Origin: Obrimoposthia wandeli
Lineage: Eukaryota
Assembly: GCA_977020255.1 (NCBI GenBank)
Contig: CDROCS010001101.1
Location: 186,001-250,000 of the forward strand
DNA: 64,000 nt
Direction: 5' to 3'
Below, in pieces: positions 20,187 through 32,003 of this stretch (position 1 is its first letter; each line of letters begins with the position of its first letter). A model generated the notes under the pieces. It had not been told where the DNA came from, made no database searches, and was given only the letters and a program-made list of their open reading frames with translations. The translations under genes and the position numbers were made by a program.

Positions 20187-20795
20187 ATGTCGAATATTAA
20201 TGTCTGTAATAAATGTGATCTCATTGTCGATCATATCCCATTAGAAAAAGGCAAGCATGCGCACTGCCCTCGCTGTAATACTCTCTTATATACCAACAAG
20301 ATTTTTTCGATCAGTACTATTTTAGCGCTTTCAATAACAGGCCTTATACTTGTAGTACTTGCTAATGTGTTCCCGATGTTTACGATCACACTGTTAGGTG
20401 TCAAAGAATCAGCAACGCTTATCCAAGGTGCGTGGGCGTTATTAGAACAGAAGTTTTATTTTGTTGGTTTATTGGTGATTTTTTGCAGTTTCATTGCCCC
20501 CTTTCTATTTCTATCTTGTCTAGCGCAAGTTTGTTTATTGTTACTAACGAAACGTAATACACCACAATTGATTTTATTACTTAAGCTCATAAACTTTACG
20601 ACCAAATGGAGCATGTTAGAAGTTTACCTTGTTAGCTTTTTGATTGCGGTATTTAAGCTCTCTGATATTGCTGACATTGAGTTACAACTCGGATTATTGA
20701 GTTTTGTCTCACTTATGTTCATTTCAAGCCTTATTATGTATGGACTTAACCTGGAACTTTTCTGGCAAAAGATGGAGCGAAATGCAAAACGCTAA
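20187..20795 (+). CDS. PqiA/LetA(YebS) family, N-terminal half
   Basis: CNKC..CPRC Zn motif, then TM helices with KWSMLEVYLVS. Confidence 0.85.
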   Translation: MSNINVCNKCDLIVDHIPLEKGKHAHCPRCNTLLYTNKIFSISTILALSITGLILVVLANVFPMFTITLLGVKESATLIQGAWALLEQKFYFVGLLVIFCSFIAPFLFLSCLAQVCLLLLTKRNTPQLILLLKLINFTTKWSMLEVYLVSFLIAVFKLSDIADIELQLGLLSFVSLMFISSLIMYGLNLELFWQKMERNAKR

Positions 20796-21405
20796 AGAAA
20801 ATAAAATAGCCCAGTGCCAAGAGTGTCATCTCCTTATTAAGGTGGAGGAAGATGTTAAACGTCAGCGCTGTCCGCGTTGCTTTACACAGGTTGACTTTAG
20901 AATTCCGCGGAGCATTCAAAAAACGTGGGCATTTTTGATCTCTGCCATGATCATGATGATACCGGCCAATTTTTTACCTATTAGCACGTTAACGAGTACT
21001 GGCAACGCTACTCCGGATACCATCATGTCCGGTACTATCGCGTTAGCAAAAAGTGATAATCTAGGTATCGCGATTATTATTTTTATCGCCTCTATTCTAG
21101 TACCCTTATTTAAAATCATTGGTTTAATGCTTATTTTGTTGTCTGTACAAAACAAGATTTTTATTACACCAAAACGAAAATTAATATTATTTAATGCCAT
21201 TCATTGGATCGGAAAATGGTCCATTATGGATTTGTTTGTTATATCGATTATGGTCGCGGTGATCAACCGAGGTAATTTACTCTCTGTTGATGTCGGATAT
21301 GGAGCAACTTGCTTTGGTCTGGTTGTTGTTTTAACAATCTTAGCTGCAGAAAGTTTTGATACACGTTTAATTTGGGATTTAAACCATAAAAATGAAAGAA
21401 AATAA
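20782..21405 (+). CDS. PqiA/LetA(YebS) family, C-terminal half
   Basis: ATG at 20782 with GGAG upstream. CQEC..CPRC, SIQKTWAFL, IGKWSIMDLFV, FDTRLIWD. Confidence 0.85.
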   Translation: MQNAKENKIAQCQECHLLIKVEEDVKRQRCPRCFTQVDFRIPRSIQKTWAFLISAMIMMIPANFLPISTLTSTGNATPDTIMSGTIALAKSDNLGIAIIIFIASILVPLFKIIGLMLILLSVQNKIFITPKRKLILFNAIHWIGKWSIMDLFVISIMVAVINRGNLLSVDVGYGATCFGLVVVLTILAAESFDTRLIWDLNHKNERK

Positions 21406-24097
21406 CGAACCACAAATGCCGGAAAATTGTAATGCGCCTAAGCCTGTATTACATAAACCGAATGTGATGTCACCTATCTGGTTGTTGCCCATCGTCGCCG
21501 TTGTTCTTGGGCTTTACCTCATGTACCAAAGTATTACTCAGGCAGGTATTGAGATCCGCGTACATTTTGATAATGCTAATGGTATTGTTGAAGGTAAAAC
21601 GCTGATCAAATACCAAGGTTTGAATATTGGTAAAGTAAAGCAGATTGCATTAGATGACGATCTTAAAGGTATCTACGTCACAGCAGAAGTAGACAGCAAA
21701 GCAGAACAGGTATTACGCAGCAATACACAGTTCTGGTTAGTAGCACCGAAAGCGTCAATTGCTGGCATTTCAGGTCTTGATGCTCTTGTGACAGGTAACT
21801 ACATCAACTTATCACCGGGTGATGGTGAATACAGCGTTGAATTTGATGCCGTTAAAACTGCGCCAAATACATTACCTGACGATAAGGGGTTGATTGTACG
21901 ACTTACAGCAGACAAGCTTGCATCTGTTCGTCCTGGTTCGGAAATATTTTATAAAAAGATCCCTGTTGGTCAAGTACACAGTTTCGTACTCGACAAAAAA
22001 ACCGATGACATATTAGTAGAAGCAGTCATAAAGCAGCAATATAGCTACCTAGTAAAAGACTCTTCACGTTTTTGGAATGCCAGTGGCATCAATGCAGAAT
22101 TTGGCTTTGATGGTATTAATATCCAAACTGAAAGTCTCACGGCCATTATCAGTGGTGCGTTGGCATTCGACTCTCCAGCAGATGGTAACCAAGCAGAAAA
22201 TAATCAAGCTTATAAACTCTATAGCAGTATCAGTAATGCCGAGCGCGCCGTTCAAATAGAACTTAACCTCAGCAATACCAACGATATTAAAGCGGGTAAC
22301 AATATCTATTTAAACGGCCAGCAAGTCGGTGAAGTTACCCAAGTAATTAGCCAATCGACTGATCCCGCAACAAATAAAACAACATCGCTTGCAAAAGCGT
22401 TTGCCGATGTTGACCCTGAAATCGTTGAGTTATTACGTGACGGCACACAGTTCTGGGTTGAAAAAGCTAACCTGTCGTTATCAGATATTAAAAATGTAGG
22501 AAATCTTGTTACTGGTAATTATATTCTCTTTACCCCAGGACAAGGCGAGCTCCAAACAACGTTTGATTTAGTGTCTAACGTTGATGATCTTATTCCTCAC
22601 CAGAAAATCGCCATTTCAGCAAGCGATGCTAATGGTTTAGCGGTTGGTAATAAGATCTATTATAAGAATTATCCGGTAGGTCATATTAGCCGCGTGACGT
22701 TTAATACTAAAACCAACTTAATTGATTTAAATGTCAATATCTACCAAGACTATGCTCATCTACTGCGCCGTTCAACACGCTTTATTAATATCAGTGGTGT
22801 CTCAGTTGATGCGAGTGTTACTGGTCTGAATATCAAGTCAGCGCCTATTGCGGCCTTGGTTAGTGGCGGTATCGAACTGGTTAATGACGCAGTGTTTAAA
22901 CCAAAGGGTCGTGATCAACAATACCAACTATATCCTTCTCTAGCGCTTGCCAAGTTAGGCAGTAATGCATTTAAAGCCAACAAGAAAATTACCCTATTGA
23001 GTAAACCAAGTCATGTGATCTCAAGTGGTGCTCCGGTTTACTACCGCAAACTTGAAGTGGGTTCAGTCGCCGACTTTAAATTAGCTGCTGACAATGAACA
23101 TGTTGTTATTACGCTAGATATACAGAGTCAGTACGCCCACTTAATCAATGAGAACAGTGTATTTTGGGACGTATCAGGTATTGATATCTCGGGTAGTTTA
23201 AGTAACTTAAAGGTGCAAACAGAGTCCTTGCTTACTATCGCTGCTGGTGGTATTAATTTTGATAATATTAAACCAGTGAATAAAAATAAAGTACGACTGT
23301 CTAAATCGAAAACCACGCATTATAAACTATTCCGTAGTTTAGCAGCCGCTACCGATGATCGCCCGACGGTGACACTTACCTTTACGTCAGGCTCTGACAT
23401 TCATGTCGGCACTGAAATTAAACATAAAGGCATCAAAGTCGGTGAGATTAGTGAGATTAAATTAAATGTCGAGCAAGGTTTTATCGAGGCTAAAGCTAAG
23501 TTAGAAACCGATTACGCCAACCATTTCGCACGACAAGGCAGCCAATATTGGTTGGAAAGTATTGAAGTCGGATTGGAAGGTATCAAAAACGCCAATACGC
23601 TAATATCTGGTGCCTATATTAATGTAACGAAGGGCCAAGGTAACCGCCTCACTCGTTTTAAAGTGTTGAATGGCGCGCCTGAAATTGCCGCTGAACATGT
23701 TGGTCTATCTATCACTGTTATCAGTAAACGGTTAATGGGATTAACAGCTGGCACACCGGTTTACTTCCGTCAAATTGAAGTGGGTTCAGTGACTCACTCT
23801 GAATTGTCGGAGCAGAGCGATAAAGTCCTTATCACCCTGAATATTGAACCTAAATACCAACACCTAGTCCGCGATAATAGTCAGTTCTGGGCGGTATCAG
23901 GTTTCAATGTTGATATTGGTCTTACTGGTGCAACGTTAAAAGCAGAATCATTAAAAACGATCCTAGCCGGTGGTATTGCCTTTGCGACACCAAACTCAAC
24001 GAATGGCAGTGCGCCAGCAGCCCCCTTTAGTCGATTCAATTTGGCTCAAGAAGTGAATGCCGATTGGCTAGACTGGGATACCAAAATAGCTAAATAA
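21392..24097 (+). CDS. letB: Multi-MCE-domain lipid transport protein LetB (YebT)
   Basis: MSPIWLLP TM anchor. Repeated MCE motifs (YQGLNIGKV, YKKIPVGQV, YKNYPVGHI, YRKLEVGSV, HKGIKVGEI, FRQIEVGSV). Lies between the yebS halves and rsmF. Confidence 0.88.
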   Translation: MKENNEPQMPENCNAPKPVLHKPNVMSPIWLLPIVAVVLGLYLMYQSITQAGIEIRVHFDNANGIVEGKTLIKYQGLNIGKVKQIALDDDLKGIYVTAEVDSKAEQVLRSNTQFWLVAPKASIAGISGLDALVTGNYINLSPGDGEYSVEFDAVKTAPNTLPDDKGLIVRLTADKLASVRPGSEIFYKKIPVGQVHSFVLDKKTDDILVEAVIKQQYSYLVKDSSRFWNASGINAEFGFDGINIQTESLTAIISGALAFDSPADGNQAENNQAYKLYSSISNAERAVQIELNLSNTNDIKAGNNIYLNGQQVGEVTQVISQSTDPATNKTTSLAKAFADVDPEIVELLRDGTQFWVEKANLSLSDIKNVGNLVTGNYILFTPGQGELQTTFDLVSNVDDLIPHQKIAISASDANGLAVGNKIYYKNYPVGHISRVTFNTKTNLIDLNVNIYQDYAHLLRRSTRFINISGVSVDASVTGLNIKSAPIAALVSGGIELVNDAVFKPKGRDQQYQLYPSLALAKLGSNAFKANKKITLLSKPSHVISSGAPVYYRKLEVGSVADFKLAADNEHVVITLDIQSQYAHLINENSVFWDVSGIDISGSLSNLKVQTESLLTIAAGGINFDNIKPVNKNKVRLSKSKTTHYKLFRSLAAATDDRPTVTLTFTSGSDIHVGTEIKHKGIKVGEISEIKLNVEQGFIEAKAKLETDYANHFARQGSQYWLESIEVGLEGIKNANTLISGAYINVTKGQGNRLTRFKVLNGAPEIAAEHVGLSITVISKRLMGLTAGTPVYFRQIEVGSVTHSELSEQSDKVLITLNIEPKYQHLVRDNSQFWAVSGFNVDIGLTGATLKAESLKTILAGGIAFATPNSTNGSAPAAPFSRFNLAQEVNADWLDWDTKIAK

Positions 24098-25684: not shown

Positions 25685-25729
25685 AGAGTTAATGAATAAC
25701 TGATTTAACAAATAAGGCATTTGTTAATG

Positions 25730-25762
25730 AATTAAGACCCCATCGATAGTGGGTTCTTAATT
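25730..25762 (+). terminator. Terminator after rsmF
   Basis: AATTAAGACCCC-ATCGATAGT-GGGTTCTTAATT followed by T. Confidence 0.6.
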
Positions 25763-25915
25763 TGCTCAAGCGCACAATAAAATGACGGTAATTTGATATA
25801 TGTAAATAATTTACTATATTTAAATACACGTTCATACCAATTTCCCTAAGCTCATTACAAGGATTTGTACTGGGCTTTTTTTTATTTTTTTTATATTTAT
25901 TAAAATATAACTAAG

Positions 25916-25948
25916 CTTGAAAATACGTTTCTAATTATTCCCGCTAAT
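25916..25948 (+). promoter_or_regulatory. Possible sigma32-type promoter upstream of the DUF2760/Hsp70 cluster
   Basis: Perfect -35 CTTGAAA, 17-nt spacer, degenerate -10 CCCGCTAAT (consensus CCCCATnT). Confidence 0.3.
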
Positions 25949-26092
25949 ATGGCTACTCTTTGTTCCTAACTACAAATGATTTGTACCTAACTACAGGCTA
26001 AATAAGCAAAAAAATCACATTATACTCCGCAACATAAATAACTATGATAAAATCGCCGATAATATTGATTTATACAAACTTGAGTAAAATAT

Positions 26093-26737
26093 ATGAACTT
26101 CGACCTTACAAATATCTCTGAACTACCTGCTGGCCCTGACGCAGCGCACATTGCTTTATTCGCGCTTTCCGTGATCCTGTTACTACTCACTCTCATTCGA
26201 GGCGGTAAAAAAACAGTTGAAATAGAAAAGATTGTTGAAAAAGAAATAGAAGTTAAAGTGGAAGTAGAAAAAATTGTAGAGGTAATCAAACACGTTGACG
26301 TTGAGAAAATCGTTGAAGTTGAAAAGATTGTCGAAATCAAAGCCCCACTACAAGAAGCAAGCCCTGCAGCCGCTTGCCAGCTTTTATCATTACTCCAAAA
26401 TGAAGCGCGTTTCGTTGACTTCATTCAAGAAGATTTAACCGGTGCATCGGATGAACAAATTGGTGCAGCAGCACGCATCATCCACACTGGCAGCAAAAAA
26501 GTAATCAATGAATACTTTAGCTTCACGCCAATCCGCACTGAAGAAGAAGAAAGCCAAGTAACCGTTGCTGAAGGTTTTAACCCATCAGAAATAAAACTGA
26601 TTGGTAACGTATTAGGTTCTGCACCTTACCGTGGCATTTTAGTACACGCTGGTTGGAAAATCAGTAATGTAAACTTACCTAAATTAGCACAAGGCCATAA
26701 CGCAAATATCGTTGCGCCAGCAGAGGTAGAACTATGA
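26093..26737 (+). CDS. DUF2760-family protein with N-terminal TM helix and VEKIVE repeats (putative GrpE-like)
   Basis: TM AHIALFALSVILLLLTLI; four (V/I)EKIVE repeats; QLLSLLQNEARFVDFIQEDL...GFNPSEIKLIG...GILVHAGW...APAEVEL. The stop overlaps the next ATG (ATGA). Confidence 0.8.
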   Translation: MNFDLTNISELPAGPDAAHIALFALSVILLLLTLIRGGKKTVEIEKIVEKEIEVKVEVEKIVEVIKHVDVEKIVEVEKIVEIKAPLQEASPAAACQLLSLLQNEARFVDFIQEDLTGASDEQIGAAARIIHTGSKKVINEYFSFTPIRTEEEESQVTVAEGFNPSEIKLIGNVLGSAPYRGILVHAGWKISNVNLPKLAQGHNANIVAPAEVEL

Positions 26738-28563
26738 GCGACACGACGATGAGCGACATAGCAGCAAGATACAGTATTGGTATCGATTTAGGTACAACAC
26801 ACTGTGTATTATCGTATATCGATTTAGAGCAAGAAGGTGATAAAGCGGTTAAGCAATTGTTTGCTATTCCGCAGCTATCTGCACCGGGTTCAGTAACAGA
26901 AAAACATCAACTGCCATCTTTTGTCTATCAAGCACATGAAGATGAGATAAGTAAAGATCAAACGCCATTACCTTGGAACGCTGAAAATACTGTGCTTGTG
27001 GGTGATGTAGCACGTAAATTGGGTCTTAAAACACCGATCCGTTTAGTCTCTAGCGCAAAAAGCTGGTTAAGCCATGCAACAGTAAGCCCGCATGATGCAA
27101 TCTTACCGTTCTCAAGCCCTGATGAAGTTGAAAAGATCTCACCAGTAACTGCGACATCACTGTATTTACGCCATTTAGCGGATGCTTGGAACAATGCACA
27201 TCCTGACTCTCCTATGTCAGAACAAGATGTAACGATCACTATTCCTGCATCGTTCGATCCTGCAGCGCGAAACTTAACGGCGCAAGCCGCACAAGATTTA
27301 AATCTTAAGCATTTAAACCTGCTTGAAGAACCACAAGCTGCCGTATATAGCTGGTTAGAAGCATGCGGTGATGAATGGCGTGAGCAAGTTAATGTTGGCG
27401 ATACGATCTTGGTGGTTGATATTGGTGGTGGTACGACCGATTTATCATTAATTTCTGTGGAAGAATTAGAAGGTAACTTAACATTATCACGCGTAGCTGT
27501 AGGTGAACACATCCTACTCGGCGGTGATAATATGGATCTTGCCCTCGCTTATCGTCTAAAAATGAAATTGATGCAAGAAGGTAAGCAATTACAACCTTGG
27601 CAAATTCAAGCGATCACACACGCTTGTCGTGATGCAAAAGAACAGCTGCTATCTGACAATGACATTGATGTAATGCCAATTGTCATCCCTAGCCGAGGTT
27701 CAAAACTGATTGCAGGTACAATGCAAACAGAGCTAACGCGTGAAGAAGTGAAGCAAACTATTTTAGATGGTTTCTTCCCTGCGACTGAAGTGTCAGAAAT
27801 GCCACAGCAAAGCACACGTTCTGCATTGACACAAATTGGCTTACCGTATGCACAAGATGCGGCGATCACCAAACACATCGCTCATTTCTTGAATAAGCAG
27901 CATGACGCATTAGCATCAGATGCTGGTGACTTCATTAAGCCAACAGCGGTATTGTTTAACGGTGGTGTATTTAAATCAAATGCAATCAGCGAAAAACTAA
28001 TCGGTATTATTAACGATTGGTTAATTGCGGCTGACGTTGAACAAGAAGCGAAACTATTAACCGGTATCGATCTTGATCTTGCTGTAGCGAATGGCGCTTG
28101 TTACCACGGCTATGCTAAGCAAGGCAAAGGCGTTCGTATTAAAGGCGGCTTAGCAAGTTCATATTATGTCGGTGTTGAAAGTTCTATGCCTGCAATCCCA
28201 GGTTTTGAAGCGCCACTTGAAGCGGTATGTATCGCTCCGTTTGGTCTTGAAGAAGGCACCAATGTTAATGTAACAACGCACCAGTTTGGCTTAGTTGTTG
28301 GTCAACCGGTTAAATTTAAGTTCTTTGGCTCAACAATACGTCGCGAAGATGTTGTTGGTACTCACCTTGATTTCTGGCAGCCAGATGATCTGGAACAATT
28401 ACCAGACATCGAAGTGACGCTTGATTCAGCGAACCGTAATAGTGGTGATGTTGTGCCAGTATCGTTATCTGTAACTGTAACAGAAGTAGGTACACTTAAA
28501 GTTGAAGCACTTGCAAGTAACAGTGACGAAACTTGGGAAATTGAACTAACTGTTCGTCAATAA
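26734..28563 (+). CDS. Atypical Hsp70-family protein (NBD plus beta-domain, no helical lid)
   Basis: IGIDLGTTH, SAKSWL, TIPASF, LEEPQAA, DIGGGTTDLS, GGDNMD, LFNGG. Ends after about 140 aa of beta-rich sequence. Confidence 0.9.
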   Translation: MSDTTMSDIAARYSIGIDLGTTHCVLSYIDLEQEGDKAVKQLFAIPQLSAPGSVTEKHQLPSFVYQAHEDEISKDQTPLPWNAENTVLVGDVARKLGLKTPIRLVSSAKSWLSHATVSPHDAILPFSSPDEVEKISPVTATSLYLRHLADAWNNAHPDSPMSEQDVTITIPASFDPAARNLTAQAAQDLNLKHLNLLEEPQAAVYSWLEACGDEWREQVNVGDTILVVDIGGGTTDLSLISVEELEGNLTLSRVAVGEHILLGGDNMDLALAYRLKMKLMQEGKQLQPWQIQAITHACRDAKEQLLSDNDIDVMPIVIPSRGSKLIAGTMQTELTREEVKQTILDGFFPATEVSEMPQQSTRSALTQIGLPYAQDAAITKHIAHFLNKQHDALASDAGDFIKPTAVLFNGGVFKSNAISEKLIGIINDWLIAADVEQEAKLLTGIDLDLAVANGACYHGYAKQGKGVRIKGGLASSYYVGVESSMPAIPGFEAPLEAVCIAPFGLEEGTNVNVTTHQFGLVVGQPVKFKFFGSTIRREDVVGTHLDFWQPDDLEQLPDIEVTLDSANRNSGDVVPVSLSVTVTEVGTLKVEALASNSDETWEIELTVRQ

Positions 28564-28599
28564 TAATGACACAGTCATCATATTGATCAGTATGTACTT

Positions 28600-28626
28600 A
28601 ACTCAGGGCTCTTAGCCCTGAGTTTT
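28600..28626 (+). terminator. Strong hairpin/terminator between the two Hsp70 genes
   Basis: AACTCAGGGCT-CTT-AGCCCTGAGTT followed by TTATT. Confidence 0.75.
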
Positions 28627-28644
28627 ATTATATGGAGTTAATGA

Positions 28645-31455
28645 ATGCCCTCACCTGTTTCTAAAACAGCGCAATACGTAATTGGCATCGATCTGGGCAC
28701 TACTCACAGTGTGCTATCTTATAAAAACATCGATGATTATCAAACCAGCGCATCAGTATTCCATGTAGACCAATTAGTTGGTCCTGGCGAAGTTGCCAGA
28801 AAGCCGTTACTCCCTTCATTCCGCTATCACTTTAATGATAACGAAATTGCGACAACAGATTGTGTTTTACCTTGGCAACCGAGCCGATTTGAAGGTGAAA
28901 TCAGCAATGTGATCGTTGGCCAATGGGCTCGCGATCTCGGCACTAAAACTAAAGGCCGTTTAGTCTCTAGCGCCAAAAGTTGGTTATCGCATCCAAGCAT
29001 TGATGCGCAAGCTGCTATTTTACCTTGGGCAGTTGAAGATAATATTGAAAAAGTATCGCCAGTTATTGCCAGTGCCAGTTACCTTGCGCATTTTCAAGCA
29101 TCTTGGAATTACCATAATCCAACGCACTTACTTGCAGATCAGAATATTACCATCACAGTCCCTGCTTCTTTTAACGATACGGCCCGTGCGTTAACACTGG
29201 CTGCGGCAGATCTGGTTGGCTTAACAAATGTCACTTTATTAGAAGAGCCTCAGGCCGTTTGCTACGATTGGTATCATCGTAATAAACAAGCTAAAACAGA
29301 TTTGATCGAACATGATAAAACCATGCTTGTGTGTGACATCGGTGGCGGCACAACAGATCTAAGTTTAATTGAAATGTCATTAGAGCATGGAGAGTTGAAT
29401 TTAAATCGTGTCGCAGTTGGTGATCACCTAATGCTTGGTGGTGATAACATCGATTTAGCCTTAGCGCATATTGTCGAATCAAGAATTTCACCGGGGCAAC
29501 GTTTACAAGCGGCAGCACTGGGTCAACTTATCCAACAAACCCGTCAGGCTAAAGAGTTATTTTTATCAGAGCAACCACCAAGCACGACATCGATTACGTT
29601 GCTCGGTCGTGGCTCAAAGCTTGTCGCGCAATCAAAGAAATGCGAACTGACAAAAAATGAAGTCGTTGATATGGTATTTAATGGTTTCTTGCCAAATAGC
29701 AGCTTTAGCCAATTACCAAGTCACCGTAAGAATGCGGTTGTTGAATTTGGTTTACCGTATACGTCAGATCCCGCTATTTCAAAACACATAGCCGAATTCA
29801 TCCATACTTATTACGACGTGCCTGCAACTGAAGATTACGATCCTACGATCGTACCAGCAGCAATCTTGGTAAATGGTGGTATTTTCAATAGCCAACAAGT
29901 AAAACAGCACATCGAAAAAGTGTTATCTGGTTGGAAGAAACAAAAAGTGCAGATGCTCCACAATGGTAATCCAGATTTGTCTGTTGCTTTTGGCGCTGTA
30001 GAGTTTGCTTTTGCTAAGCTAGGTAAGCAAAAACAAATTGGTGGCGGTAGTCCGCGTAACTATTTCATTGAGATCACAGACCGTTCAGGTCAACCTCAAT
30101 CGATTTGTCTTTTACCTAAGGGAACAGAAGATGAACAAGTTATCAATTTAGATAGCCGTTTGTTCTCGTTAACCATCGGTGAACCAATTCGTTTTAATCT
30201 TGCGACCACGAGCCATGAGAGTAATTTCAAACCGGGGGATATTATTGAAGCGAAGTCAGCGACAGAATTGAAAGGTAAAACGCCTTTACCACCTTTTGTT
30301 GTGACGATCCCTGAGCATAAAGATCATAAACGTTTTGAATCTGTTTACCTGTCTTGCAAACTAAGCAGCATTGGTACCTTACAATTAGAATGTGTTAGCG
30401 AAACCAATAGTAAGCAACGTTGGGCTTTAGAATTTTCGGTACGCCCGAGTTTATCAAACAAAAACACTGGCGATGACAGTCATAGCGTCAATGATATTAA
30501 ACAGCGTCACCCTAAATTACCTGAAGCGATCCAGTTAATTGAATCAGTATATGGCGCGAGTAGTAAAAAGAGTGATCCTAAATTAGTTAAATCATTACGC
30601 AACGATTTGGATAAACGCTTAGGTAAGCGTGATACTTGGGATACTGATTTATTACGTGAACTGGCAGCGCCTTGTTTACAGTTTGCTAAAAACCGTCGTC
30701 GTACCGAACAACACGAACGTAATTGGTTAAAGCTAACCAGTTTCTTACTTCGCCCTGGTTTTGGTTACCCTGCTGATGATTGGCGTATTGAACAGATGTG
30801 GCCGATATTCAAATCTGCTATTCAATACAATAAATCGACACAGTCATGGAGTGATTGGTGGAATCTATGGCGCCGTATTGCTGGTGGTCTTAATGAACAA
30901 CAGCAAATAGAAATATACGACACGATTTCAATCTATTTTGTTGAAGACAATAATAAAAACGCCAAAGTGATCAACCAAGCTAAGCTACGCAGTTATGATG
31001 ATATTATCCGACTTGCGGCATCGCTAGAGCACATTCCGGTGGCTCTGAAAGTTGAATTTGGTGAATACTTGCTGACTAAATTGAAGAAACCACAAAATCA
31101 GCAACTACATTGGTGGGCTTTAGGCCGCATAGCGTCACGCGTTGCTTTTTATGGTAGTCAGCACAATGTCATTCCCCGTCATATTGTTGAGACATGGTTA
31201 AATACATTACTCGACGCTGATTGGCAAAAAGAACCACACATTGCATTTGCTGCTGTAATGATTGCCAGAAAAACCGGTGATCGAGAAATGGATATTCAGG
31301 ATAAGGTTAGAGACGCTGTTATTGAAAAGTTAACGCAGAATAAGTTATCTGAATCTTGGTTAGAACTTGTACGTGAAGTGCAAACCTCTGATGAAACAGT
31401 GATGAAGCGTATTTTTGGTGACAGTCTACCGACAGGCTTAACGCTTTTGTCGTAA
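28645..31455 (+). CDS. Atypical Hsp70-family protein with a ~330-aa C-terminal helical extension (DUF3731-type)
   Basis: IGIDLGTTH, SAKSWL, TVPASF, LEEPQAV, DIGGGTTDLS, GGDNID, LVNGG. The extension is Trp/Arg-rich (HERNWLKL..LRPGFGYPADDWR, WWALGRI). Confidence 0.88.
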   Translation: MPSPVSKTAQYVIGIDLGTTHSVLSYKNIDDYQTSASVFHVDQLVGPGEVARKPLLPSFRYHFNDNEIATTDCVLPWQPSRFEGEISNVIVGQWARDLGTKTKGRLVSSAKSWLSHPSIDAQAAILPWAVEDNIEKVSPVIASASYLAHFQASWNYHNPTHLLADQNITITVPASFNDTARALTLAAADLVGLTNVTLLEEPQAVCYDWYHRNKQAKTDLIEHDKTMLVCDIGGGTTDLSLIEMSLEHGELNLNRVAVGDHLMLGGDNIDLALAHIVESRISPGQRLQAAALGQLIQQTRQAKELFLSEQPPSTTSITLLGRGSKLVAQSKKCELTKNEVVDMVFNGFLPNSSFSQLPSHRKNAVVEFGLPYTSDPAISKHIAEFIHTYYDVPATEDYDPTIVPAAILVNGGIFNSQQVKQHIEKVLSGWKKQKVQMLHNGNPDLSVAFGAVEFAFAKLGKQKQIGGGSPRNYFIEITDRSGQPQSICLLPKGTEDEQVINLDSRLFSLTIGEPIRFNLATTSHESNFKPGDIIEAKSATELKGKTPLPPFVVTIPEHKDHKRFESVYLSCKLSSIGTLQLECVSETNSKQRWALEFSVRPSLSNKNTGDDSHSVNDIKQRHPKLPEAIQLIESVYGASSKKSDPKLVKSLRNDLDKRLGKRDTWDTDLLRELAAPCLQFAKNRRRTEQHERNWLKLTSFLLRPGFGYPADDWRIEQMWPIFKSAIQYNKSTQSWSDWWNLWRRIAGGLNEQQQIEIYDTISIYFVEDNNKNAKVINQAKLRSYDDIIRLAASLEHIPVALKVEFGEYLLTKLKKPQNQQLHWWALGRIASRVAFYGSQHNVIPRHIVETWLNTLLDADWQKEPHIAFAAVMIARKTGDREMDIQDKVRDAVIEKLTQNKLSESWLELVREVQTSDETVMKRIFGDSLPTGLTLLS

Positions 31456-31489: not shown

Positions 31490-31522
31490 AGCAGGCTACT
31501 GTATGTATATAGTAGACCTGCT
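31490..31522. terminator. Hairpin between the convergent Hsp70 and TerB genes
   Basis: AGCAGG-CTACT-(10 nt)-AGTAG-A-CCTGCT. Confidence 0.6.
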
Positions 31523-31559: not shown

Positions 31560-32003
31560 CTAGACACATGCCGCTAACTTAGCTTTGATGTAATCTGAAT
31601 GTGTAATGTAAATGAGATCCGCCACTTGTCTAATTAAAGCCTCTTCATGTGGATCAATAACACCGTCCGCATAAGCAACACGCCACATAGATTCTATAAG
31701 TACATACCTTTGTTTATATTCAACATTCCGTAATTTGGATGTGAATTCATAAATTGATACCGCATCTTCACTGTTCTTTTTGGCTGTGGCTAACAACGTA
31801 CTGGCTCTATCAGTATCTATATTCAGTAACAAGGAAAGTTGATGTATTTTAGCAATGCTTTCTTTTTCAGTTATATCATTATCTGCACTCGCCACTTCGC
31901 ATAATAAAGCCGCCATCGATAATTCAAAGCCCTGATCATCAGCCGTATTTGATGATGAGTCTTCAGACAACTGCTTAAATAAACTGTGTAATGCTTTAAA
32001 CAT
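31560..32003 (-). CDS. TerB-family (tellurite-resistance/DjlA N-terminal fold) protein
   Basis: AALLCEVASADND and MWRVAYADGVIDPHEEALIRQVADL: the two AxADG-type TerB motifs. Confidence 0.85.
   Translation of the reverse strand: MFKALHSLFKQLSEDSSSNTADDQGFELSMAALLCEVASADNDITEKESIAKIHQLSLLLNIDTDRASTLLATAKKNSEDAVSIYEFTSKLRNVEYKQRYVLIESMWRVAYADGVIDPHEEALIRQVADLIYITHSDYIKAKLAACV

Follow-up and report, generated by a model that had tools for sequence, protein, structure and literature searches.

We analyzed a 64,000-nucleotide (nt) stretch of DNA (the window) from contig CDROCS010001101.1 of the Obrimoposthia wandeli assembly GCA_977020255.1 (positions 186,001 to 250,000 of the forward strand). Within it lies a three-gene operon, D-A-B, which encodes a protein of the DUF2760 family and two Hsp70-like ATPases, Hsp70-A and Hsp70-B. 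We favor the view, at a probability of roughly 0.55, that the products of these genes form a self-contained remodeling machine of two Hsp70s that is recruited to the membrane and works independently of J proteins and GrpE. Four lines of evidence bear on this proposal: the three genes are kept together across about 10 phyla, both Hsp70s retain an intact ATPase core, both have diverged from DnaK at the linker and at the J-contact site, and neither has an alpha-helical lid. The operon consists of the following genes, predicted as open reading frames (ORFs) and assigned by Pfam; lengths are in amino acids (aa), and NBD denotes the nucleotide-binding domain.

26093..26737 (+): gene D, DUF2760 protein, 214 aa (ORF and Pfam PF10816)
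26734..28563 (+): gene A (Hsp70-A), lid-less Hsp70-like ATPase, 609 aa (ORF and Pfam HSP70 NBD)
28645..31455 (+): gene B (Hsp70-B), Hsp70-like ATPase with DUF3731, 936 aa (ORF and Pfam)

The D-A-B unit is conserved across bacterial phyla

A first-pass annotation, made from the letters of the window alone, had described three co-oriented genes with an overlap between the first two. The ORFs proved exact, and the stop codon of D and the start codon of A share the tetranucleotide ATGA at 26734-26737. The ribosome-binding site of A also overlaps the end of D, with its GAGG lying within the E-V codons of the C-terminal sequence APAEVEL.

Relatives of B are abundant, with at least 1140 clusters (50% identity) at E-values up to 1e-30, and these matches are full-length at 33-48% identity. 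Scanning one genome per species yielded 80 loci from Gamma- and Betaproteobacteria, Myxococcota, Planctomycetota, Verrucomicrobiota, Desulfobacterota, Binatia, Lentisphaerota, Fibrobacterota and Methylomirabilota. We surveyed gene order in this set with our own ORF calling combined with phmmer and hmmsearch, and 72 of the loci had enough upstream DNA to be informative. Colinear D-A-B was found in 57 of the 72, an arrangement far beyond chance, and three further loci carry D, a fragmented A, and B. Many Vibrio species possess the triad, among them V. parahaemolyticus, V. alginolyticus and V. harveyi, and it is also present in Burkholderia cenocepacia, in B. multivorans and in members of environmental phyla. 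At 35 of 59 loci the D and A genes share 4 or 1 nt, which indicates that the translational coupling is itself conserved. The A-B junction is more variable, with gaps of ~45 to 180 nt in Vibrionaceae and abutting or overlapping genes in most other lineages.

The first-pass annotation had also portrayed the triad as self-contained, and the neighborhood survey bears this out. When ORFs within 6 kb of the loci were clustered by BLAST, no further conserved neighbor emerged besides D, A and B. The commonest flanking families were PAS histidine kinases (13 loci), GGDEF proteins (11 loci) and ABC ATPases (10 loci), together with LysR, SDR and MCP proteins. Their side and strand vary from locus to locus, and they are simply the families that such genomes contain in greatest abundance. 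At none of the 80 loci did we see linkage to dnaK, dnaJ or grpE.

Hsp70-A and Hsp70-B keep the ATPase core and depart from DnaK at the linker and J-contact site

Both proteins match the Pfam HSP70 NBD (E = 8.5e-16 for A and 2.8e-16 for B), and searches of the PDB sequences with A and B returned only the NBDs of DnaK and other Hsp70s. The motifs GIDLGTT, SAKSWL, LLEEPQA and DIGGGTT are present in both, and the ATPase motifs are invariant across 57 B homologs and 37-55 A homologs, so the early observation that the DnaK ATPase residues are retained extends to both families. In B numbering the positions invariant in both families are D16/G18/T19, K111, E200-E201, D231-x-GGGT236, GGDN268xD270 and NGG411; K109 and E198 are the counterparts of K111 and E200 in A. 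With DLGTT, the catalytic Lys and Glu, DxGGGT and the adenosine motifs in place, A and B belong to the Hsp70 superfamily (ASKHA NBD, PF00012). The two proteins share 38% identity along the entire length of A (609 residues), which makes B an A-like protein with a C-terminal extension of ~330 residues. On sequence grounds, the two are ancient paralogs. Within the triad, constraint is strongest on A, with a mean column identity of 55%, compared to 37% for B and 33% for D.

The regions that couple DnaK to its co-chaperone are different. DnaK contacts the J domain through residues R167, N170 and T173; in a profile alignment to E. coli DnaK these positions are occupied by T, E and Q, and neither A nor B carries the canonical J-contact residues. 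Immediately after the NBD, GxRIxGG-xARSYY replaces the VLLLD-VTPLSLG of DnaK, and the linker of A in this organism reads GVRIKGG, which is non-canonical. Thus, as had been noted at the outset, the canonical DnaK linker (VLLLD) and the alpha-helical lid are absent from both proteins. A J-domain gene is lacking as well: profile scans detected neither a J domain nor GrpE in the triad or in 19 other ORFs of the window.

The C-terminal halves contain a substrate-binding beta-domain and, in B, a helical solenoid

A refinement of the first-pass annotation concerns the regions that follow the NBDs. Both Hsp70s retain the beta-domain of an Hsp70-type substrate-binding domain (SBD-beta), as judged from a model for B and from sequence identity for A. 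The domains of the two proteins were assigned as follows, with AlphaFold2 abbreviated as AF2.

B residues ~1-460: NBD
30058-30438 (+): B residues 472-598, SBD-beta sandwich (AF2 model)
30478-31416 (+): B residues 612-924, ARM/HEAT-like solenoid corresponding to DUF3731 (AF2 model and Pfam)
31417-31452 (+): B residues 925-936, conserved hydrophobic tail LPxGLxL
28129-28560 (+): A residues ~466-609, SBD-beta-like domain (inferred from the B model)

At the sequence level, a Pfam search of the C-terminal half of B left the SBD undetected and gave DUF3731 as the only match, with no weak recurrent others. B scores 321.2 bits against this family (PF12531, "DNA-K related protein"; cut-off 25, E = 7.8e-96). 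We therefore turned to an AF2 model of B residues 455-936, built from a 57-sequence alignment, which reached a mean predicted local distance difference test score (pLDDT) of 89.4 and a predicted template modeling score of 0.79. The model contains a beta-sandwich (residues 472-598), ~17 helices (residues 612-924) and a short terminal strand (residues 932-934). A Foldseek search with it returned 48 top matches that are all Hsp70 SBDs or SBD-containing Hsp70 chains (BiP, DnaK, mortalin and HscA) at E-values of about 1e-4 and a probability of 1.00; the match after these was importin-alpha, aligned over 423 columns. Because the two domains of B are oriented unlike an SBD and its lid, global TM-scores and root-mean-square deviations were poor, and the fold was assigned domain by domain. 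The model thus gives B an Hsp70-type SBD-beta and depicts the protein as an NBD, an SBD-beta and an ARM/HEAT-like solenoid that takes the place of the lid. For A, the 38% identity to B over its whole length suggests the same beta-domain fold, and A lacks a lid because the protein ends directly after this domain.

Conservation within the solenoid is concentrated in Arg and Trp residues. The invariants are mostly of these two kinds (W665, R671, RPG 703-705, D711, R743-R744, E795 and R832), and R703-P704-G705 (the RPG motif) and R743-R744 (the WRR motif) are invariant or nearly so. The C-terminal tail of B (GxxLPxGLxL) is modeled with fairly high confidence as a short beta-strand, which may pair with the SBD-beta as a pseudo-substrate or clamp.

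Gene D encodes a DUF2760 protein with a predicted membrane anchor

D matches DUF2760 (PF10816) over profile positions 3-124 of 124, with 170.8 bits against a cut-off of 25 (E = 1.3e-50). It comprises three parts.

26141-26203 (+): residues 17-37, transmembrane (TM) helix, hydropathy maximum 2.61
26204-26359 (+): residues 38-89, low-complexity spacer of the EKIVE type
26360-26734 (+): residues 90-214, DUF2760 alpha/beta domain, ending in APAEVEL

In the AF2 model of D (pLDDT 83.5 overall), the helix at residues 17-37 has a pLDDT of 94, the spacer is disordered, and residues 85-214 exceed 90. In the compact domain, four helices precede four strands. An acidic N-terminus lies before the TM helix and RGGKK lies after it, which by the positive-inside rule would place the DUF2760 domain in the cytoplasm. 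Invariant residues of the domain are R106, D109, D120, R128, E152, H185 and W188. The spacer of D in the window consists of imperfect EKIVE/VEVEK units with strict alternation of hydrophobic and charged residues, and no tandem repeats were found in it at the DNA level. Among homologs, the spacer is EKIVE-like with alternating hydrophobic and charged residues in Moritella and Vibrionaceae, and Pro/Ala-rich in Betaproteobacteria. Part of the conservation at the C-terminus of D could reflect the overlapping ribosome-binding site of A; the conservation of the APAEVEL end persists in loci where D and A are separated.

The first-pass annotation had cast D as a membrane-bound exchange factor for the Hsp70s, and the two halves of that proposal fared differently. 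A membrane tether is supported for D of this organism by the TM helix and its positive-inside flank, and is clear in only ~40% of D homologs. Assignment as an exchange factor was not sustained. Foldseek found no relative of D in the PDB (best E = 1.4, TM about 0.1), and a phmmer search of the PDB sequences gave no match at E up to 1. With no PDB relative and no other Pfam match, D is not recognizable as GrpE, BAG, an ARM-type nucleotide-exchange factor (HspBP1/Fes1/Sil1) or a J protein.

The triad is distinct from characterized Hsp70 systems

We compared A and B with curated NCBIfam models of the Hsp70s whose functions are established. Against DnaK (TIGR02350/PRK00290), A scores 49 bits and B scores 52-55 bits, where the cut-offs are 648 and 822.55. 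Scores against HscA (TIGR01991/PRK05183) are 78-83 bits, compared to cut-offs of 620 and 708.55, and no isc genes (hscB or iscU linkage) occur in the flanks of the surveyed loci. YegD (PRK11678) consists of an NBD only, whereas A and B both have a beta-domain, and they score 29.5 and 34.6 bits against its cut-off of 331. Cut-offs for DnaK, HscA and YegD are therefore missed by factors of 4 to 17, and A and B are not those characterized paralogs. The first-pass annotation had itself raised identity with paralogs such as HscC/YegD as a counterargument. For HscC, neither A nor B had an NCBIfam match in this profile scan, which is not a direct comparison with the HscC protein.

The likeness to other systems is one of parts rather than of the whole. 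The DnaK-DnaJ-GrpE system shares with the triad the actin-like NBD, the catalytic residues and the SBD-beta sandwich. It differs in that the triad has no alpha-helical lid, no VLLLD, no J-contact residues and no linked J-protein or GrpE gene, and instead combines two paralogous Hsp70s with a co-factor whose fold has no PDB relative. With the eukaryotic Hsp70-Hsp110 pairs (Sse1/Grp170), the triad has in common two paralogs of the Hsp70 superfamily, which may act as a heterodimer, and one member with an enlarged C-terminal region, a diverged linker and diverged J-responsiveness. However, the triad has an independent bacterial origin, A and B are equally diverged from DnaK, and the extension of B folds as an ARM/HEAT-like solenoid instead of an extended three-helix-bundle lid.

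Hsp70 systems with a dedicated membrane-anchored co-factor, DjlC or DjlA, exist in E. coli as HscC-DjlC and DjlA-DnaK. The resemblance lies in a specialized Hsp70 encoded beside such a co-factor; in the triad the co-factor has neither a J domain nor a PDB relative, and there are two Hsp70s instead of one. The Tim44-mtHsp70 import motor and BiP-Sec63 also hold an Hsp70 at the membrane through a dedicated anchor, but this is a functional analogy only, as DUF2760 has no fold similarity to Tim44 or any PDB entry and no translocon gene is linked to the triad. One Planctomycetota locus with B alone (L063, 5025-12877) does adjoin a SecA-like gene: an OEP-domain protein (976 aa) and a SecA-like protein (644 aa) are encoded on the same strand and precede B.

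In Myxococcus xanthus, the StkA locus similarly joins small partner genes in one operon to an Hsp70 that is atypical and not of the heat-shock type. We rejected the identification of the triad with this locus. StkA is a 540-aa protein whose gene precedes those for an SCP2-like protein and a protein of 89 aa, and the locus has no DUF2760, second Hsp70 or DUF3731. Finally, CnuD of the CoCoNuT systems joins an Hsp70-like NBD and SBD to HEAT-like repeats, has degenerate Walker-like motifs, and is linked to genes for an McrB-like GTPase, McrC and HEPN proteins (PMC11090510). CnuD/CnuCD (Type IV restriction) and B thus have the same three-part architecture. B differs in its invariant ATPase motifs, and no McrBC-type neighbor occurs among the flank families that are conserved or frequent at the 80 loci.

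Inheritance is mainly vertical

A FastTree phylogeny of 78 B proteins grouped genera and families as in the taxonomy. The tree requires 14 changes of phylum, compared to a minimum of 8 and a mean of 30.8 after shuffling, and Myxococcota are split several times. Inheritance of B therefore appears mainly vertical, with a tree that is largely congruent with taxonomy. Among 72,556 plasmid records, B was found on 11, most of which are megabase-sized secondary replicons of Burkholderia and Caballeronia. Bradyrhizobium barranii plasmid pCC829_3 (6387-11796 of the extracted locus), a conjugative plasmid of 110 kb, carries the full D-A-B, flanked by the trb genes on one side and a topoisomerase/traA region on the other, with a gene for a MarR regulator just upstream. 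The complete triad on this plasmid indicates that the module is able to travel as a unit.

DUF3731 had no match in 50,697 phage records, and 2.9 million IMG/VR contigs gave only generic matches to the DnaK-like NBD, none of which extended past residue 465. Searches with PADLOC-DB v2 produced partial matches to PDC-M61B only, over ~100 residues (E = 6e-6 and 2e-5), with none for D and no full-length match to a defense-system model. Together, the phage, plasmid and PADLOC results do not fit the profile of a defense-island gene.

Literature and candidate counterparts in Vibrio cholerae

Pfam and genome annotation already list DUF2760 and DUF3731, which makes the genes known unknowns. In the literature searched, no paper named DUF2760, DUF3731, PF10816 or PF12531, and no functional study of them was found; the triad as a system and its function are likewise without a description there, although the Hsp70 kind itself is known. 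A 2026 review in FEBS J regards bacterial DnaK derivatives as unexplored, except for HscA and partly HscC, and proposes for the NBD-containing ones co-chaperone roles of the Hsp110 type (PMC13580251).

Published work on V. cholerae may nevertheless bear on the triad. VC1373 and VC1374 carry the annotation "DnaK-related" and belong to the operon VC1373-1375, whose expression was found to be repressed in biofilms (PMC9201469). HapR binds the VC1375 promoter and activates it directly, both in vivo and in vitro (PMC10328515). VC1374 also appears, with a log2 fold change of -2.7, in a table of transcripts that compares wild type with a vc1639 sensor-kinase mutant in a study of the polymyxin B response. 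These expression data point to a role in planktonic cells at high density rather than in heat shock, with the caveat that VC1373-1375 is mapped to the triad by annotation only. One surveyed locus, L037 (JACGDM010000002.1), is labeled V. cholerae BI-5D. The Hsp70-A of this locus shares 86-87% identity with proteins of V. tubiashii, V. natriegens and V. alginolyticus, and its top 120 matches include no V. cholerae protein. The genome is closest to the V. tubiashii/V. alginolyticus group, and the species label looks doubtful.

Proposed mechanism and alternatives

The membrane-recruited two-Hsp70 machine that we favor could operate as follows. D would be anchored in the inner membrane, its DUF2760 domain facing the cytoplasm, and would recruit and/or regulate A and B. 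The two Hsp70s would work as a pair, possibly NBD to NBD by analogy with Hsp70-Hsp110, each modulating the nucleotide cycle of the other. ATP-driven opening and closing of both SBD-beta clefts would bind and release extended segments of a membrane-proximal client, and the solenoid of B would serve as a docking platform for the client or a partner, or as a substitute for the lid. A bolder form of this model, which we put forward only tentatively, is an autonomous motor independent of J proteins and GrpE. Two lid-less paralogs would drive each other's cycles, an adaptor whose fold lacks a PDB relative would position them at the inner membrane, and the solenoid would replace the lid and select a dedicated membrane-proximal client, amounting to a third Hsp70 regulatory logic.

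Several observations weigh against the favored model. The first concerns composition. Approximately 8 loci have B without a nearby A or D (a Gemmataceae clade, some Planctomycetota, one Verrucomicrobiota and Methylomonas lenta), and these share no alternative partner. At two more loci, L072 (9231-12862) and L076 (9123-12784), B comes directly after D without an intervening A, and their closest sisters, L062 and L069, carry D-A-B; the source of L072 is a complete 5.2-Mb Binatia chromosome. Given these loci, a strict 1:1:1 model is not universal. Both kinds of variant retain all ATPase and DUF3731 invariants. The remaining points concern D and the Vibrio data. Defining a clear TM segment as a 19-residue window with hydropathy of at least 1.9, we found one in ~15 of 39 D homologs; in the others the N-terminal helix is amphipathic and aromatic/basic, with the pattern FxRxxLAFxxFF[RK]xL. 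Because D is unlike any known Hsp70 co-factor, a regulatory role for it is argued from gene linkage alone. Its conserved C-terminal tail is modeled as ordered (pLDDT about 89-90), which weakens an already tentative idea that we considered, namely that a free, EEVD-like tail of D docks onto the Arg-rich solenoid of B. Lastly, the published HapR site of VC1375 is absent from the L037 locus, and VC1373-1375 is thus equated with the triad by annotation names only.

Other explanations place the triad in the service of a different process. A and B might be Hsp110-like accessory co-chaperones that act in exchange or disaggregation for the housekeeping DnaK, with D only localizing them. The review cited above proposes such a role for NBD-containing DnaK derivatives (PMC13580251), and the loss of J-contact residues and of the canonical linker parallels Hsp110. 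We nonetheless think this unlikely, as two paralogs co-inherited with a dedicated third gene are more than an exchange factor requires, the catalytic residues and SBD-beta are strictly conserved in both A and B, and the 80 loci show no linkage to dnaK, dnaJ or grpE. The triad could instead be a regulatory or signaling module in the manner of Ssz1 or StkA, which would hold or release a single regulator at the membrane and so control a specific process such as matrix production, motility or cyclic-di-GMP output, in place of general remodeling. StkA regulates exopolysaccharide in M. xanthus, the probable V. cholerae operon (again mapped by annotation only) is HapR-activated and biofilm-repressed, and histidine kinases, GGDEF proteins and MCPs are the commonest flanking families. 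But those families are merely the most abundant and have no fixed position or orientation, the composition of the stk locus shows that it is not homologous as a system, and the V. cholerae mapping is unconfirmed by sequence. This explanation, too, seems to us improbable.

The Arg-rich solenoid raises a further idea, that B binds nucleic acid or ribosomes and that the Hsp70s form a membrane-tethered pair resembling RAC/Ssb that acts on nascent membrane proteins. Consistent with this, the invariant motifs of DUF3731 are built on Arg and Trp (W665, R671, RPG 703-705, R743-R744 and R832), the operon adjoins rsmF in this genome, and Koonin and colleagues suggest RNA binding for proteins that combine Hsp70-like and HEAT parts (PMC11090510). 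The suggestion is purely by analogy, however; the rsmF adjacency is limited to Moritella, Pfam scans detected no RNA-binding domain, and we regard the idea as very unlikely. Least probable of all, in our judgment, is an anti-phage or conflict system related to CoCoNuT CnuD, in which the Hsp70-like proteins would sense infection and D would be the effector. The first-pass annotation had allowed for an anti-phage role, and the architecture shared by B and CnuD (PMC11090510), the weak PADLOC matches to PDC-M61B, and a self-contained module with variable flanks and an occasional plasmid location would suit it. Yet those PADLOC matches cover only ~100 residues at E-values of about 1e-5, the surveyed flanks hold no McrBC or nuclease neighbors, and the ATPase motifs are intact, unlike those of CnuD. 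Members are also absent from the phage and IMG/VR collections and rare on plasmids (mostly megabase-sized), the B tree tracks taxonomy, and the flanks of the operon are housekeeping genes. These findings told against the anti-phage proposal.

The prevailing view is that Hsp70s need J-domain proteins and exchange factors in order to function. Against this background, the operon is a sharply defined, very widespread and experimentally tractable case, with three co-inherited parts that have confident models and invariant residues. Its client, once worked out, would show how an Hsp70 can run without a J protein, would reveal which membrane-proximal process needs a dedicated ATP-driven remodeler, and would assign function to two Pfam DUFs (DUF2760 and DUF3731). 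If the autonomous motor proves true, the triad would be a bacterial, independently evolved counterpart of Hsp70-Hsp110.

Genomic setting and candidate control elements

D is 88-97% identical to Moritella proteins, and by this measure the chromosome that carries the operon is that of Moritella. A Pfam and NCBIfam scan of the window ORFs identified a block of gdh, pepN, prc, proQ, letA, letB and rsmF 5' of the operon, which confirms its initial placement after a conserved rsmF block. On the 3' side, B is followed by genes for TerB, a dCache-GGDEF protein, an MsbA-like ABC exporter, chitobiase, a porin, a DsbA-like protein and pgm. From this gene content, the region is chromosomal with housekeeping flanks. 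The region between letA and the B stop codon (31455) is colinear with a second Moritella genome (L039) at 82% nucleotide identity, and the similarity breaks off right at that codon. The adjacency of rsmF and the operon is specific to Moritella. Candidate control elements are as follows.

25685..26092 (+): AT-rich intergenic region, 408 bp, 5' of the operon
25793-25820 (+): top sigma-70-like match in that region, 10/12, a consensus match that is not itself functional evidence
28600..28624 (+): hairpin with an 11-bp stem, then a U-rich tract, in the 81-nt A-B spacer
31490..31522 (no strand): imperfect inverted repeat between the convergent B and TerB genes, spotted by eye

The number of promoter-like sites in the 408-bp spacer upstream of D was not above shuffled expectation. 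The A-B hairpin is kept in the second Moritella genome with a 10-bp stem, where only the innermost base pair and the loop have changed. Possible functions are attenuation within the operon and RNA processing or stability, and the hairpin may set the A:B expression ratio. The inverted repeat downstream of B may be a bidirectional terminator; the terminator scan left it unflagged.

Two neighboring genes of the upstream block deserve mention. In E. coli LetA, both PqiA domains lie within one protein. The letA/yebS-like gene of the window is present as two ORFs (20187-20795 and 20704-21405, +) with one PqiA domain each, which overlap by 92 nt in different frames and may reflect a frameshift, a sequencing error or a natural split. 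Next to it, 21392-24097 (+) encodes a 901-aa LetB/YebT-like protein with seven MlaD/MCE stretches, for which the best NCBIfam name is PqiB; this gene is a member of the prc-proQ-letA-letB-rsmF block.

TerB is not part of the unit, since synteny with the second Moritella genome ends immediately after B. The gene adjoins the triad in 4 of 81 loci and is not common to both Moritella genomes. In the window it encodes a 147-aa TerB-domain protein (31560-32003, -) that is convergent to B, has no J domain, and weakly resembles the TerB-like portion of DjlA, a membrane J-protein (NCBIfam E = 3e-4).

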